A DNA stretch of 64,000 nucleotides, taken from contig NC_081362.1 of NCBI RefSeq assembly GCF_030684315.1, forward strand, positions 95,711,187 to 95,775,186. Direction: 5' to 3'. The DNA is from Stegostoma tigrinum (Eukaryota). The position numbers were made by a program, and so were the translations under genes. The notes under the pieces were generated by a model. The model was not told the DNA's origin and ran no database searches. It saw only the letters and a program-made list of their open reading frames with translations. Positions 32,527-40,790 of this stretch are shown piece by piece; positions within the stretch are counted from its first letter, which is position 1, and each line of letters begins with the position of its first letter.

Positions 32527-33532
32527 TGAGTAACCAAGACTTTGTACAGCTGAAGTATGAATTGTACTTCCTTGCATACTGGTGCTCTAGATTATAACAA
32601 CCAACATTTCATTAGCCTTTTTGATTATTTGGGAACATAGTGTCTCGTGTTTTAAGCATGACGAGGAGTTTCTTGTCTGGCGAATTGTTAATTTTTGAGC
32701 CTAGAGAACAACGAAGCCTGGGTTGTAGAATATATTCCTCAGGTTTTTGATCCTTAATGGAATCAAGGGTTACAGGTGATGTTGTGACCACAAACAGATC
32801 AGCATGGTCTTATTGGCCCCAAGAGATGAACTACAAAATTCTCTGTAAATTTTTTTTGATGCTGCACAGACCTCCAATTTGTGTGGCAGTGGCTTCTGGA
32901 AGCAGGAAATATTCACCCACACTCCAGTCAACATGTGCAGAACTTCCCTTTGGCCGCACAGCCCAGAGGGAGTATTGGCTGAGTGGTTGCCTTCTACTCC
33001 TGTTCCACGCATTCTTGAGCTTGGTGCCCTTTTGTGAATGGTCAAACCTAAGTATCTGGACACTCCTGTCTCCTTGGAGATTTACTGTTACCATCAAGAA
33101 AGTGTTCTGCCCTATTCTTTTCTTGGGGACGTTATAGTGTGGTGGTAATATCATCGGACGAATAATCCCCAACACGAGGCTAATGTTTTTGAGTCATGAG
33201 TTTGAATCCCAGGCAGTGAAATCTGAATTCAATTTTTAAAATAGGTTAGCCTAATGATTACCATATTTGTCAATTTGCTCCACAAATTAGACGAGGGAAA
33301 AGAAAGCACATACCCAAATTTGCAGATGGCAGAAACAGAGTGAGTTTTGCAACCTGTGTGAATGTAAGTATGACATTTTCAGTGATTATCATGAAAGCCT
33401 GTCTGATTCACTAATATCCTATAGGGAAGTAAATCCTGGTCTCTTACCTGGTCTGATTTACATGTAACTCCAGAATCAGAGCAATGTGTCTGACTGGATG
33501 TGAGTTTGCTCGCTGAGCTGGAAGGTTAGTTT

Positions 33533-33575
33533 TCAGACGTTTTGTCACTATTACAGGTAACATCATCAGTGAGCC
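33533..33575 (-). ncRNA. Minimal type I hammerhead ribozyme motif of the PLE (core G mutated)
   Basis: Minus strand: gcuca CUGAUGA u guuac cuguaaua gugac aAAA CGUC uga. Core CUGAUGA, stem II guuac/gugac, GAAA changed to AAAA (CpG-type decay), palindromic ACGU stem III, GUC cleavage triplet. The plus-strand copy is split by Tx1 (34227-34252 / 39612-39627). Confidence 0.7.
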
Positions 33576-34466
33576 TCTGACGAAGCGCTGGTGTTATGTC
33601 CTGCTTTCTATTTATCTGTTTAGGTTTCCTTGGGTTGGTGATGTCATTTCCTGTTCTTTTTCTCAGAGGATGGTAGATTGATTTGGAGCCAATGTGGTTG
33701 TTGATGGAGTTCCGGTTGGAATGCCATGCTTCTAGGAATTCTCGTGCGTGTCTCTGTTTGGCTTGTCCTAGGATGGATGTGTTGTCCCAATCAAAGTGGT
33801 GTCCTTCCTCATCTGTATGTAAGGATACGAGTGACAGTGGGTCATGTCGTTTTGTGGCTAGTTGATGTTCATGTATCCTGGTGGCTAGCTTTCTGCCAGT
33901 TTGTCCAATGTAGTGTTTGTCACAGTTCTTGCAAGATATTTTGCCACAAAACGACATGACCCACTATCACTAGTATCCTTACATACAGATGAGAAAGGAC
34001 ACCACTTTGATTGGGACAACACATCCATCCTAGGACAAGCCAATCAGAGACACGCATGAGAATTCCTAGAAGCATGGCATTCCAACCGGAACTCCATCAA
34101 CAAACACATTGATTTGGAGCCAATCTACCATCCTCTGAGAAAAAGAACAGGAAATGACATCACCAACCCAAGGAAACCTAAACAGATAAATAGAAAGCGG
34201 GACATAACACCAGCGCTTCACTGGAGGCTCACTGTTGATGTTACCTAGAATGGTGACGGAACATCTGGGAACAAACCTTCAAGCTCAGTGAACCAGCTTA
34301 CATCCGGAACAAAATAAAGACCCACTCTCTTGTGGACCGAGAGGAGGAGAGTGCTGTGTTGGAGGTGAAAGGAAGACGTCGGGTTGGCTGTGCACCCTTG
34401 CAACCAGTGGATCTTAATGCTGGCTTCGGCCTAACGCTGGTTCAGGGGAGCAGCCAACCTGCAACG

Positions 34467-35900
34467 ATGGCTGCGGCAAGTGCTCGTGCCCCAGGTCAGG
34501 GGGTCCGGAACACCATCCGTGTTTCCGTGAAGAAGGTGGATGAAGTTGCACCTGTGGACCACACCTTCTTCGTGAAGAGGGTCCTGTTGGACTGTTGCGG
34601 GTTCGCTGCTGCGGACATTTACTGCCTGCAGGATTTCCCTGGAGGAGGTTTTTACGATGTGACCTTCAGGAGTGCCAAGCTTTGCGAGCACTTCCTGGAG
34701 GTTTTCAAGGAGAAAGGAGGTGAGGGTCCCCTCTCTGTATTGACCGCTGTCCCGCTGTTTGTGATGCCAGCGCAGAGGAGCCGTATGGTGACTGTACATA
34801 TGTACAATCCGCACGTGCCAGCAGTTGATGTCCTGACCTTCCTCGGAAGGTACGTGAAGGTGGAAGGGGACCTAACTGACATCATGGACCCCTTTGGCAT
34901 CTGGATGAGTAAGATGCAGGTGAAGGTGACGCTGAGGATGGGCGCGGACGGGAACGTCGTACACCCACCGTACAGCTTCGCGATCGGCGGGAGCAAGGGC
35001 TACCTGACCTATGCAGGGCAACCTAAAGTCTGCCATGCCTGTGGTAGGTCAGGTCATGTGGCGGCCGACTGCAAAGCCACCATCTGCAGGGAGGAGGGAC
35101 ACCTTGCAAAGGATTGCCCACGAGAGAGAAGCTGCAACCTTTGCGGGTAAGCGGGCCACCTCTATAGGGCATGCCCGCCGCGGGGGACCACCTACGCCCA
35201 GGTTGCCGGCAAGGGCAATGCGGGGCCAGGCCCCGGAGGAGAGGAAGGCACCAGGGCCCAGCAAGGACCCCACTAATGTGCAGGAGGGCCAGGTCATGCA
35301 GGAGGGCCCAGCCCCGCAGGATGGACCCGAGGCCAGCAAAGCGCCCCTGCAGGCTCCGCTCCCCCCCACCCCCCCAACAACCCGGAGTCGATGGAGGCGG
35401 CAACAGGCGACCCAGGGGACTGGACGACGGTCCGGAAAGCGAGGAGGAAGGTGTGTCGACGGGCCCAGGAACCGCAACCATCAGGCAGGAAGAGGCAGCT
35501 ACAGGGGGGGGGGGTATAAGAGCTCCTCTGACGATGGGGATTCGGAGAGGGCCTGCCCGAAGCAGAAGATAAAGATCTCCAGGGAGAAGGAAAGCAGCAC
35601 CACGCTTCCAGGTGACGGGAGGCTTCCTGAGGCTCCCTCCGACACCCAGTCAAGTGCCGCTGGGGCACTGGAGGGGCCCCCGGTACTTCCAGGCGGGAAG
35701 GAGGAAACAGCGCGTCTCCAGCCTGACCCAGAGCCGGACCCTCCTGCCTCCCCACCCCCGATGGGGGGATGCCACCCGGAAGGCAGCACGGACGGTTTCC
35801 TGAGCCTGGAGAGCGTCCAGCAGTTAGCCCGGGCAATGGGCATGAAGGGACAGATGGAGGGCTGGTCCTTGGACTTGGGGAGGGTACTGCGGTCACTGCC
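34467..35900 (+). pseudogene. Tx1 ORF1 (Gag-knuckle, ZCCHC3-like), disrupted
   Basis: MAAASARAPGQGVRNTIRV..DIYCLQDFPGGGFYDVTF..VHMYNPHVP..DVLTFLGRY..YAGQPKVCHACGRSGHVAADC..CREEGHLAKDC..CNLCG*AGHLYRACP. Premature TAA at 35148-35150, then a frameshifted Pro-rich C-terminus; end approximate. Confidence 0.85.
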
Positions 35901-35904
35901 CACA

Positions 35905-38900
35905 ATGGGGGTACGAGTTGCGAGCATTAATGTGCGCAGTGTCAAGTCCACCGCAAGATGTGTATCCACGTTGGCCTACCTGACCACCATCAAGGCGGAT
36001 CTCCTGTTTCTGCAGGAGTGCGGGATACCGCACCTCGGCAGGTACAGGAAATGGTCCGGCGCCTGGACCTGTGGGTCTTCGATCTGGTCGGGGGGGTAAC
36101 GATTGTCGCTCCTCGGGCCTGGCTATTCTGCTGCGGGGGCGCGACTTCACCATCGCTCAAGTTCAGGAGGTGGTGGGGGGGCGCCTCCTAGTAGCTGACG
36201 TCACCTACAGCAATGCTCCCCTGAGGCTGATCAATGTGTGCGCCCCAGCGGTACGGAGTGAGCGGTTGGCCGTCCTGCAGCGGCTTCCACCCCTGCTGGC
36301 TATGTCCAGGCCGGTCATCCTTGGCGGAGACTTCAACTACATCATCGATGCAGACGGAAGATCCGGCGTGGGGACAGCGGGTGGGGGGAGTCAACTGGGC
36401 GTCACGTCCCGATTCCTGATGGGCACGGTCAAGGACGCCAAGCTCCTCGACGTCTTCAGCACCACTGTAGACGAAGCGCAGCGGAGGTACACCTGGTCGC
36501 AGCCAGACGGGTCTATTCGCTCAAGGATAGACTTCCTGTTTGTGTCACGGGCGTTCTCTGTCAGGTCAACCAGCATGGAGCCGGTGTTCTTCTCTGACCA
36601 CTGCCTCCTGCTGGCCGACTGTCACTTACAGGACGACCAGCAGGCCGGCAAGGGGACGTGGAAGCTCAACACAACTCTGTTGACCCCAGAGAATGTCGAG
36701 GAGCTTAAGAGGGAGTACACTGGTTGGAGAACCGTGAAACCCCTCTTTGAGTCTCTGGGTGACTGGCGGGAGCCGGTGAAGGAGAACATCAAGAGGTTCT
36801 TTGTCCTCAAGGGTGTTCGGAAGGCAAGAGAGAGGCGGGGAAAGCTGTCGCGACTCCAGAAAAGGGTGCAGACCCTGCTCCTTCTGCAGTTGATGGGGGT
36901 CGATGTCACGGAGGACCTCCGCGACGTGAGGGGCCAGCAAGCCTCGCTCTTCGCCGCGGAGGCCTCCAGGATAATCTTCCGGTCCAGGGTCCGCTCCGTG
37001 GAGCAGGACGAGACGTGCTCGCGTTTCTTCTTTCAGAAGGTGCACAAAGCGAGCTCTGTGCTTAGCCGGCTGAAGGAGGACGACAGCTCGGTGACGTCCT
37101 CTCGGCCCAACATTTTGAGGATCAGCAGATCCTTCTATGCCGGACTGGACGACATGAAGCCCACGGACAGCACGGCCTCAGAGTCGTTCCTGTGGTCTAT
37201 CACGGAGGTCTTAGACGATGGCACGAGGGAGTGGCTGGACCGGCCGATATCCCTGGACGAGCTGACCAGAGCCCTCAAGTCCTTGGAGAGGAATAGGACT
37301 CACGGGAGTGACGGCTTACTGGTCGAACTGTATTCCGCTCTGTGGGACCTGGTTGGCCAGGACCTGCTGGAGGTGTACGATAGTGCGCTTCGGGCAGGGG
37401 AAATGTGCGTGCAAGTCCATGAGGAAGGGCATCATCTCCCTCATTTACAAGAGGAAGGGGAGAGGGAAGAAATTAAGAATTGGCGTCCCATTTCACGATT
37501 GAACGTGGACTACAAAATCCTGGCCAAGGTCATAGCCAACTGGGTCAGGTCTGTCCTGGAGTCGGTGATTCACCCTGACCAAACCTGTGCTGTGCCGGCC
37601 AGGAAGATCGCTGAGAGCCTCGCGCTCATCAGGGATACAATTGCCTACGTACAAGACAGGCAGGTGGACACCTGCCTCGTCAGCCTGGACCAGGAGAAGG
37701 CCTGCGACAGGGTCTCTCATGCTTACATGAGGGACATCCTCTCCAAATTGAGGTTCGGGGAGGGCATCCGCAATTGGATCCGGCTGCTCTACGCCAACAT
37801 GGTTAACGCAGTCTCGATCAACGGGTGGGAATCGGACAGTTTTCCCGTCAGATCTGGAGTCAGGCAGGGCTGCCCGCTCTCTCCTGCCTTGTTCATGTGC
37901 TGTGTGGAGCCCTTCGCCGCATCCATCAGGAAGGACGTGAGCCTGAAGGGCGTGACTATCCCAGGCAGCGGAGGCCTTCAGGTCAAGACCTCCCTGTACA
38001 TGGACGATGTCGCCGTCTTCTGCACCGATCGTTGGTTGGTGAGTGAGCTGTTGGACACCTGCGGCCAGTTTGAACTGGCCTCGGGTGTCAAAGTCAATAG
38101 GGGTAAGAGCGAGGTCATGTTCTTCGGGAACTGGGACAACCGCTCCTTCATCCCCTTCACCGTCCGGACAGACTACCTGAAGGTGCTGGGTGTTTGGTTT
38201 GGTGGAGCTGGGGCGTGCACTAAGACTTGGGAGGAGCGTATCACCAAATTGAAGCAGAAGCTGGGCTGGTGGACGCTCCGGTCCCTCTCCATCGCGGGTA
38301 AGAACCTGGTTGTCAGGTGCGAGGGGCTTTTGGTACTGTTGTATGTGGTGCAGGCCTGGCCTATTCCCTGGACCTGCGCCGCTGCAGTCACCCGGGCCAT
38401 CTTCCACTTCATTTGGGGGTCGAGGATGGACCGGGTCCACAGGGACACCATGTACAAAGACCTCGAAAATGGGGGAAAGGGCGTACTGAACGCCACCCTC
38501 GCCCTGACGGCTACCTTTGTGTGCGGCTGCATCAAGCTGTGCATAGATCCTCAGTACGCAAACACCAAGTGTCACTACTTACTGAGGTTCTACCTGTCCC
38601 CGGCGTTGCGAAGGATGGGCCTGGCCTCGTTGCCGCGGAACACTCCGAGTAGTTGGACCGTCCCGTACCACCTGTCCTTCATGGAGAAATTTTTGAAAGG
38701 AAGCACCTTTGACCACAAGGCCGTCAGGCAGTGGTCAGCACATAGTATCCTCGAGACCCTTCAGGAAAAGGAGAGGGTGGATCCCGTCGTGTGGGTCCCC
38801 ACGCAGACTGCCAAAGTCGTTTGGCAGAATGCCTCATCGCCAGAACTTTCAAACAAGCACAAGGACATTGCTTGGCTGGTGGTGAGAGGGGCTCTGCCAG

Positions 38901-39328
38901 TGAGATCCTTTATTCATGCCCGGAATCTCTGCGTCACCGCACGCTGCCCTCGAGGTGGCTGTGGGGGGGACAAGACTGTCGATCACCTCCTTCTGGAGTG
39001 TGCCTATGCGCAGGAGGTCTGGAGGGGGATTCAGTGGTATTTGTCGAGGTTCGTCCCGAGCAGCTTCGTGACACGGGACTCCGTGCTCTACGGGCTGTTT
39101 CCGGGGACGCACACCGAGACCAACATCAACTGTGCCTGGAGGACCATCAATGCGGTGAAAGACGCTCTTTGGTCTGCCCGCAACTAGCTGGTCTGCCAGC
39201 TGAAAGAACTGACTCCGACCGAGTGTTGCAGACTGGCGCACTCCAAGGTCCAGGACTACGTGCTGAGGGACGCGCTAAAGCTTGGGGCTGCCACCGCCAG
39301 GGCGCGGTGGGGAAAGACCACCATATGA
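35905..39328 (+). pseudogene. Tx1 ORF2 (EN-RT-ZnF), disrupted
   Basis: MGVRVASINVRS..FLQEC; GGDFN; SRIDFLF; FSDH; NWRPIS.LNVDYKILAK; LDQEKA.D; GVRQGCPLSP; LYMDD; CPRGGC..DHLLLEC. Frameshift in the G-run at ~36090, compensating frameshifts ~37408-37460, premature TAG 39185-39187, natural stop TGA 39326-39328. Confidence 0.92.
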
Positions 39329-39774
39329 AACCTCGCATCCAGAATAGAAAAAAGGGCCCTATCTGGTACCTGGGCCCAGCTGGCGCCTTCCCCAACTGGT
39401 CAGGGGGCCAACTGGAACTATGCGGGGTGACGACTGCCGGGGTATTTTCTTTGCTTTGTTTTTTGTTTCTTCTTTGTTTGTTTTTTTCCTTTAGTTGATG
39501 TATGTACCCCCTGGGTAACCCGGAGCGGCTTGCATGACTGGGTAGGTGTATAAATATGTTTTATTTTTTGTACATCTTATGAATCAAGTATATTTTTTCA
39601 AATAAAAAAAAGTGACGAAACGTCTGAAAACTAACCTTCCAGCTCAGCGAGCAAACTCACATCCAGAACCTCAACCTGAACTGCAAATCTTCTCAAAACT
39701 TCTCATGTGTCTGACTCTCCGACAGTTATGGTTGGGCAATAATTGCTGCCCCATCTCTTAATTTTTTTTTAATA

Positions 39775-40790
39775 ATCCAAAGTAGATAACCTCACAGTTG
39801 CTTGTCTCGAAATGCATTTTCTGCAGTTTTACCTGTTCATTTCATCAGCTAACATTTCTGTAATGTTATGTTTATGTTCACACGGCTTATAAGGCTCTTT
39901 GTTTATGAAATCTGCAAATTTGGATATTTGCTTTCTGTTCCTCATCTAATTTGTTGATGAATACTTTAAATAGTTGAAGCTCCAGCACAAATGTTTGTGA
40001 GATTCCGCTAGCTGCTTTGTGCCAGTTCAGGTCCCTCTCTTGTATCCCTCCTGTCTCCTGCTGTTCAGCCCATTTCCCTGTGCTGGTCCATAAACTGTTC
40101 CCATTACTCAGAACCTCACAGCTGATCATCTCTTACAAGGAATTTTATTAAGTGTCGCTGGAAATCTTTATAAAAATATCTAAAGACACTCTTTGCCAAT
40201 AGGAGTCATTTGGCATGACCCACCCTTTACAAGTTAGACTCTGTCTGATCAGCTGAAAATGCTGGAGGTGTTCGGTCAGCCTATTCCTAAATATAGACTC
40301 CCTGAGAACAGACATCAGGCTTAACTGGTTTATAATTTCTGCCACATTTTTCTCAGCAAGCTGTCTTGAGCAAATTACTCTTTCCAGGAAGATAGGCATA
40401 GTAGCAGAATGCCTAGAATACAGCTTTAGTCCTATTATCTAAGGAAAGATTTACTGGCACTGGAGGGAATTCAGAGTCCTGCACTGGGAGAGGTTGAGAA
40501 GGTTGGGCCTTTGCTGTTGTTGGAGTTTAGTAGAATGAGTGGAAACCTTATTGAAACAAGTAAGATTCTATCAAAGGGTCACGAATCTGTGCACTTCACT
40601 ACCCCAGAATGTGGTGGAACCTGGGACAATGTGTATATTTAAGAAGATAGACAGACAGGTTTTTAAGTGGTAACAAGTTGAAGGGTTATGGAGAGTGGGC
40701 AGAAAAGTGGAATTGAAGCCAAAATTAGATTAGCTAAAATCGTATTAAATGGTGGAGCTGGTTTGAGGGGCTGAGTGGCCTACTCTTGTG
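39775..40790. mobile_element. Decayed CR1 fragments (minus ~39775-40400, plus 3' tail ~40410-40790)
   Basis: SGISQ..VL..QLF..FIN.LDE on the minus strand; CR1 tail motifs on the plus strand. Confidence 0.65.

Follow-up and report, generated by a model that had tools for sequence, protein, structure and literature searches.

Several long interspersed nuclear elements (LINEs) of the Tx1 clade insert into specific targets, among them Tx1L of Xenopus laevis, which enters the DNA transposon Tx1D, Keno, which enters U2 small nuclear RNA (snRNA) genes, and Kibi and Koshi, which enter microsatellites (PMC4494074). Co-transcription with the target has been discussed for elements mobilised by Tx1 (PMC4494074), and R2 RNAs that keep upstream 28S sequence have been proposed to anneal to their target, giving uniform 5' junctions (PMC3774820). 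Penelope-like elements (PLEs) are retroelements of another class. They are known for an inverted, 5'-truncated copy at the 5' side and a one-sided tail of 30–40 bp; the pseudo-long terminal repeat (pLTR) of Penelope contains a transcription start and an internal promoter, and the function of PLE hammerhead ribozymes has been called unclear (PMC8557442). In vitro these minimal hammerheads show little or no activity as monomers, a dimer being needed (PMC4209133). Here we describe a locus from Stegostoma tigrinum contig NC_081362.1, within a window (the whole stretch of DNA that was analysed) of 64,000 nt free of N, in which a LINE of L1/Tx1 type is lodged inside the minimal hammerhead of a PLE. 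We consider it probable that this LINE belongs to a high-copy family that homes to one nucleotide in helix II of the PLE ribozyme, by the mechanism proposed below.

The locus is a composite of two retroelements. The outer element, a PLE at 33496-39704, is a 5'-truncated copy in inverted-dimer form and is bounded by a 12-bp target-site duplication (TSD), atgtgtctgact; its direct arm spans 33942-34252 and resumes at 39612-39704, beyond the inner LINE. An earlier, sequence-only reading of the window had recognised an L1/Tx1-type LINE inside a PLE minimal hammerhead, and both the protein domains and the hammerhead motif agree with that identification. Its account of the junctions was also accurate. 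The A-run of the LINE (39604-39611, 8 A) adjoins gtgacGAAAcGTC at 39612-39624, which is the 3' half of the hammerhead; CUCA CUGUUGA U GUUACC, at 34228-34245, forms the 5' half of this ribozyme; the 58-mer at 34253-34310 is a gap-free copy of 39612-39669, identical at 46 of 58 positions; and the inverted arm at 33496-33548 differs from 39612-39664 at a single position. With up to 3 mismatches allowed, the window contains the 20-mer gtgacgaaacgtctgaaaac two times, against an expectation of 0.00. The insertion point, …ccuagaaug/gugacgaaacguc…, is situated inside helix II, 13 nt from the cut site, and the bottom-strand nick site, GTCAC^CATTC, is not of the T-rich L1 type (TTTT/AA). A window-wide blastn search found no additional copy of the LINE or the PLE in the window.

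Sequences from public runs, some from the same organism (A) and some from another (B), were aligned to positions 33850-39800 at a likeness of at least 85%. All of the public-run sequences are contigs, which show presence and joins; RNA ends, strand and expression are outside their scope. Empty sites are represented by 97, 94 and 10 contigs (about 200), which match from 39612 rightwards and have unmatched letters before that position. The consensus of the letters before 39612 is the hammerhead 5' half, GGAGGCTCACTGATGATGTTACCTAGAATG, and the joints 34251>39612 and 34219>39612 (33 PLE letters between) are empty sites also. The breakpoint of the empty site is exactly …cctagaatg/gtgacgaaac…, with no loss of target. 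The arrangement at the 5' end of the LINE recurs in another copy (contig X1, record 1; depth 81, 15 differences), which spans 34222-34404 and takes in the hammerhead 5' half, the 58-mer and the 5' untranslated region (UTR) of the LINE. Within the 58-mer, position 34305 reads T in most contigs (C>T; 69, 55, 10 and 5 contigs in four runs), which is neither the base of the present copy nor the PLE state; the LINE-type 58-mer is therefore a regular part of many copies in both organisms. This variant, common to many contigs from the two organisms, bears out the earlier judgement that the 58-mer is too diverged for a fresh TSD and belongs to the LINE lineage, while the additional copy at 34222-34404, the 34305 variant and the empty-site breakpoint together bear out the expectation that recurrence of the 5' arrangement would point to site specificity. 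The family is very abundant, with 85,560 aligned pieces in one run. The first base of the inherited 58-mer corresponds to the very nucleotide at which PLE sequence continues behind the A-tail, which implies that no fewer than two independent insertions used this position. Given some 200 empty sites with the same breakpoint and a recurring 5' arrangement in two organisms, site-specific homing of the LINE into the PLE ribozyme appears well supported. If this is true, most A-runs of the LINE should be followed by GTGACGAAACG, 5'-truncated copies included.

The inverted (left) PLE arm was taken to preserve the target as it stood prior to the LINE insertion, and comparison with it indicates where LINE-borne sequence begins. 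The inverted repeat formed by the arms has 86% identity over 819 nt, the diverged end included. Up to 34219 the arms differ at 7 of 260 positions (97% identical, a 15-nt inverted patch being left out). A change sets in at 34220, 46 nt ahead of the GUC cut site: the 86 positions from there on include 20 mismatches (about 77% identity), through the whole ribozyme and into the 58-mer. The patch itself, ttgatttggagccaa, is identical on the + strand in both arms, at 33678-33692 and 34109-34123, and is thus inverted in one of them; it resembles a short inversion with ttg/caa at its borders. The maximum-likelihood change-point is 34220, with a log-likelihood of -78.9 compared with -87.5 at 34253 and -89.8 at 34266, that is, better by 8.7 and 10.9 units respectively, and a LINE boundary at the GUC site was rejected on the latter figure. 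Across the 49 nt of 34217-34265 we count 11 mismatches, where the background rate is 2.7% (P=7e-8), and 8 mismatches to the left arm fall in 34217-34252. Within the tract 34220-34252, position 34235 is the one departure from the genome-wide PLE consensus (1 difference in 30). The differences between the arms are linked, subfamily-type variants (ACTG vs GTCA, AG vs GT, G vs A), and both linked types are found among PLE copies in the public runs. Directly after the A-tail, the 3' flank matches the sister arm at 52 of 53 positions.

The simplest reading of this pattern is that the LINE cDNA brought in no fewer than 91 nt (34220-34310), the entire hammerhead included, and that the 5' junction was resolved by homology somewhere upstream of 34220. 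A diverged 5' side combined with a sister-matching 3' flank is the asymmetry predicted by target-primed reverse transcription (TPRT) followed by homology-driven 5' resolution. If LINE-borne sequence extends from about 34220, it follows that the template RNA of the present copy was uncut at C34265; the ribozyme probably did not cut that RNA, and a ribozyme-made 5' end at or near the junction is not what the template of this copy displays. The sequence-only reading had proposed a TSD of 13–15 bp ending at the GUC site and a LINE 5' end at U34266, a proposal which finds no support in a non-sister stretch that begins at about 34220.

The hammerhead of this PLE family is located about 90 nt before the PLE end, and its consensus, combining the public-run consensus before 39612 with 39612-39624, reads CUGAUGA-U-GUUACC…GGUGAC-GAAA-CG-UC. 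It was judged by the published criteria for minimal hammerheads, namely a CUGANGA…GAAA…UH core, a bulge between 9 and 10.1, the pair G10.1-C11.1 and a palindromic 15.2-16.2 (PMC4209133). It has a bulged U after A9, the G10.1-C11.1 pair, a 6-bp helix II, a palindromic ACGU, a 3-bp helix I and no helix III loop. At the locus itself, the 3' half at 39612-39624 is GUGAC GAAA CGUC with the cut site after C39624, and the uninterrupted hammerhead of the left arm (about 33536-33574) is mutated, G12>A. The hammerhead at the LINE 5' junction has GUGAC GGAA CAUC in the 58-mer and a predicted cut site after C34265. As had been noticed from the sequence, its helix I comprises four pairs (U-A, G-C, G-U, G-C) compared with three in the PLE, and its core is mutated by A6>U at 34235 and A13>G at 34259. 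We find a third lesion beyond these, G16.2>A at 34263, through which the ACGU palindrome is lost (now ACAU); the core at the 5' junction of the present copy is not intact. Rfam gave no hammerhead match in the searched sequence, either at gathering threshold or at E<=10, and this silence is expected because the minimal motif, without helix III, carries core mutations. Weak Rfam matches to sn1185, CRISPR-DR and leader were set aside as chance. The minimum free energy (MFE) fold of the empty site gives helix I a putative extension of 7 bp by pairing CUGGAGG (34221-34227) with CCUUCCAG (39636-39643), past a 6-nt internal loop; the left-arm variant UCAGAGG breaks the pairing, and shows no covariation.

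The anatomy of the locus, the breakpoint of the empty sites and the recurrence of the 5' arrangement are direct observations; the mechanism by which we would account for them is as follows. A sequence-specific apurinic/apyrimidinic (APE) endonuclease would nick the bottom strand of the PLE at its fixed, non-L1-like site, and reverse transcription would be primed there on the short A-tail. The LINE would be transcribed together with its host PLE, such that the LINE RNA would begin with a PLE leader consisting of upstream PLE sequence and of 58 nt that descend from the downstream side of the nick, a relic of earlier insertions. The complement of this leader on the cDNA may then anneal to the homologous target, and the 5' junction would be set by homology. 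The upstream part of the leader would be exchanged with each new target, and hence stay near the PLE consensus, as its 1 difference in 30 suggests; the 58-mer, having no partner upstream of the nick, would be inherited and drift with the LINE lineage, in keeping with its 12 differences in 58. Upstream context and 58-mer together would restore the recognition region, so that the 5' junction might again be a target. A complete hammerhead-like sequence stands at the 5' junction because the 58-nt duplication regenerates the motif, used or not, and we infer that the rebuilt hammerhead is a passive by-product which was not used on the template RNA of the present copy.

The sequence-only reading had given that ribozyme a far more active part. 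Its combination of a short TSD and a LINE 5' end at U34266 would have the rebuilt hammerhead free the LINE RNA from PLE read-through, leaving the LINE dependent on a foreign ribozyme. Such a function is suggested by the full hammerhead-like sequence regenerated at the 5' junction with one more pair in helix I, by a distance of only 13 nt between insertion point and cut site, by the recurrence of the 5' arrangement among contigs, and by the LINE 5' ribozymes known in R2, L1Tc and Schistosoma elements (PMC3774820, PMC3383444, PMC8501958). We nevertheless regard it as unlikely, since the non-sister stretch starts well upstream of the cut site and the likelihood is poorer for boundaries at 34253 and 34266. 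Furthermore, the two 13-nt copies of the proposed TSD disagree at 2 positions, the junction ribozyme of the present copy has three core or palindrome lesions, and the 58-nt duplication alone regenerates the motif. PLE minimal hammerheads are also inactive or nearly so as monomers in vitro and need a dimer (PMC4209133), and the ACAU of the junction is no longer palindromic. The change-point, the uncut template and the core lesions thus leave cutting of the LINE RNA at its 5' end without support for the present copy. It is conceivable, at a comparably low probability, that in intact young copies the regenerated 5'-junction hammerhead (PLE 5' half and LINE-borne 3' half) cleaves PLE-LINE co-transcripts, possibly as a dimer in tandem arrays, and that uncut RNAs, like the template of the present copy, are a minority; the LINE family would then depend on a ribozyme from a different retroelement class.

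Ectopic gene conversion or recombination could have copied the LINE from another occupied PLE through flanking homology, recurrence then reflecting spread at the DNA level together with few original insertions. A donor-type tract upstream of the junction and the very large number of PLE copies would be natural on such an account, but there is no corresponding tract on the 3' side, where agreement with the sister arm (52/53) sets in directly behind the A-tail, and tens of thousands of contig pieces over the full length of the LINE fit retrotransposition; we consider it quite improbable. Less probable again is a LINE without site specificity, of which a master copy entered a PLE by chance and gave progeny with a 5'-transduced PLE piece, the present copy being in a PLE by chance or regional preference. 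The leader is inherited, as this would require, and read-through 5' extensions are known for LINE-mobilised elements (PMC4494074). Chance, however, would not give a target that resumes at the exact nucleotide where the inherited 58-mer begins, and the nick site is not of the A/T-rich L1 type. Finally, the geometry of the junctions is that of a TSD, yet a plain 58-bp TSD, made at insertion and decayed later, is scarcely credible and was rejected: the divergence is 21%, compared with about 2–3% between PLE arms that are at least as old as the LINE insertion, 5 of its 12 differences are transversions, and the LINE-type variant at 34305 is common to many other copies. Homing to helix II, with a 5' junction set by homology, has difficulties of its own. 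A conversion event in either arm, without involvement of the LINE, could in principle have produced the non-sister tract 34220-34252. The contigs are silent on RNA ends, and it is we who infer transcription from the PLE and the true RNA 5' end. A single locus was read base by base, and the evidence on other copies covers the 5' arrangement and the empty sites; one uncut template, moreover, leaves room for the cutting of other templates. The closest protein match to the second open reading frame (ORF2) is 44% identical, a Pleurodeles (salamander) protein, and the clade assignment is putative.

The coding capacity of the LINE agrees with its assignment. ORF1 has two ZCCHC3-type RNA-binding domains (PF23057, PF23058) and a CCHC knuckle (PF00098), and ORF2 has an APE domain (PF03372, 6.9e-9), a reverse transcriptase (PF00078, 8.9e-33) and zf-RVT (PF13966, 2.6e-10). 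An ORF1 with RNA-binding domains and a CCHC knuckle is a trait of the Tx1 clade, unlike the coiled-coil ORF1 of mammalian-type L1. The L1/Tx1-type assignment rests on this domain architecture, and the element is a candidate member of the Tx1 clade. No close copies came up when ORF1 and ORF2 were used as protein queries, the best ORF1 match being 82% identical over 56% of ORF1; there is an ORF1-like gene in Heptranchias. Neither relatives of ORF2 nor the 25-mer of the PLE target were found in metagenome, prokaryote-genome or viral contigs, as expected of collections without the host, and a literature search found no paper linking ZCCHC3 to Tx1. The present copy is defective: its ORF2 changes frame near 36092-36096 and is interrupted by an in-frame stop codon at 39185. 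An ORF of 362 aa (35011-36099), situated between ORF1 and the APE domain, has no Pfam match and no look-alike in the ESM Atlas; it may represent ORF1 continuing beyond an indel of the present copy, and other copies show indels at 35230 and 35504. After 36095, 24 contigs of one run and 2 of another leave the present copy with a common sequence (agreement 0.99), which points to a private rearrangement of this copy at 36095, coincident with the frame change in ORF2.

Table 1. Features of the composite PLE-LINE locus, in positions of the window.
Feature	Position	Strand	Remarks
Left 12-bp TSD of the whole PLE insertion, atgtgtctgact	33484-33495	+	identical 12-mer at 39705-39716
Inverted, 5'-truncated PLE arm; holds the end of the GIY-YIG ORF and an uninterrupted minimal hammerhead	33496-33941	-	inverted repeat
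Right (direct) PLE arm, part sister to the left arm	33942-34219	+	7 mismatches in 260 nt without the 15-nt inverted patch
PLE-like non-sister stretch: helix I 5' strand, CUGUUGA, helix II 5' strand and loop	34220-34252	+	
58-nt leader, a diverged PLE copy with hammerhead 3' half GUGAC GGAA CAUC	34253-34310	+	
LINE body	34311-39611	+	domains, ORF map, A-run
LINE 5' UTR	34311-34466	+	
LINE ORF1	34467-35150	+	
362-aa ORF between ORF1 and the APE domain	35011-36099	+	overlaps the end of ORF1
LINE ORF2	about 35908-39328	+	frame change near 36092-36096, in-frame stop 39185
AATAAA	39601-39606	+	in the end of the LINE 3' UTR (39330-39611)
A-run, 8 A	39604-39611	+	closes the LINE
Remaining PLE after the insertion point: hammerhead 3' half, then PLE 3' end	39612-39704	+	
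Right 12-bp TSD of the whole PLE insertion, atgtgtctgact	39705-39716	+	

The outer element is identified as a PLE by the end of a GIY-YIG endonuclease, by a one-sided 40-nt tail with an inverted copy, and by the features of its minimal hammerhead. The minus-strand ORF of the left arm (33526-33957) is the end of a GIY-YIG endonuclease (CxxC...YIGQTGR...R..EH); its translation includes CKNCDKHYIGQTGRKLATRIHEH and REFLEAWH and contains the CxxC/CCHH motif. The match to PF01541 is weak (E=0.014, below cut-off), and the look-alike clusters of this ORF are GIY-YIG proteins, with a score of 0.93. The present PLE copy is cut down at its 5' side to about 450 nt. An extension of 40 nt (39665-39704) is found on the right end only, the left arm being without it, and other PLE copies in the public runs stop at two alternative ends, near 39665 in 143 contigs and near 39700 in 92-183; the loose ends behind 39665 and 39700 show low agreement and are the ends of these other copies. 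At position 39614, five contigs of a small run (X6) connect the PLE tail with another sequence upstream (…CACCACCCAGAATGGC), which suggests a second PLE subfamily with a common tail.

Target-specific LINEs serve as models for safe-harbour integration and for the evolution of endonuclease specificity. If a LINE homes to a ribozyme that belongs to a different class of retroelement, the list of known targets, at present RNA genes, microsatellites and a DNA transposon, would grow by a retroelement, and a vertebrate genome would be seen to harbour one parasite that lives on another in very many copies. Such homing would also offer a natural system for mapping homology-assisted 5' joining outside ribosomal DNA (rDNA), in which mosaic 5' tracts provide a countable readout of recombination between cDNA and target. 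Were the ribozyme used, this would be, to our knowledge, the first known case of a LINE borrowing the self-cleaving RNA of another element. Such use, if true, would bear on the open question of the role of PLE hammerheads (PMC8557442).

Our literature search found no paper on a Tx1 element or other LINE specific to a PLE or a hammerhead. The nearest relatives in behaviour are Tx1L and other Tx1-clade LINEs, which resemble the present element in being of APE type with ORF1 and ORF2, in their short A-tail and in entering a multicopy target at a fixed sequence; Tx1L, too, has another transposable element as its target. The present LINE differs from Tx1L, Keno, Kibi and Koshi in that its target is a PLE ribozyme and in that it has a target-derived leader of at least 58 nt, its clade being assigned by architecture. 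R2 in 28S rDNA is alike in co-transcription with the target (as we propose here), in target sequence on the RNA 5' end and in a self-cleaving motif at the 5' junction (PMC3774820). R2 has its own ribozyme, of the type found in hepatitis delta virus (HDV), and a restriction-like endonuclease, whereas here the hammerhead of the target appears to be duplicated passively and the template of the copy read was probably uncut. The HDV-like ribozyme of L1Tc (PMC3383444) and the twister variants of Schistosoma non-LTR elements (PMC8501958) are likewise found at or near the 5' end of LINE RNAs; they are encoded by the LINE and their cleavage has been shown, whereas the junction hammerhead described here derives from the PLE and is a putative ribozyme. 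The PLE consensus shares all of the features listed above with the minimal hammerheads of metazoan PLEs (PMC4209133) and shows no difference from them, whereas all three ribozyme copies at the present locus are mutated. Target-specific Tx1-clade LINEs, including one with a transposon as target (PMC4494074), and co-transcribed target leaders (PMC3774820) are thus established already; what the present locus would add is a PLE ribozyme as the target and a mosaic 5' junction.

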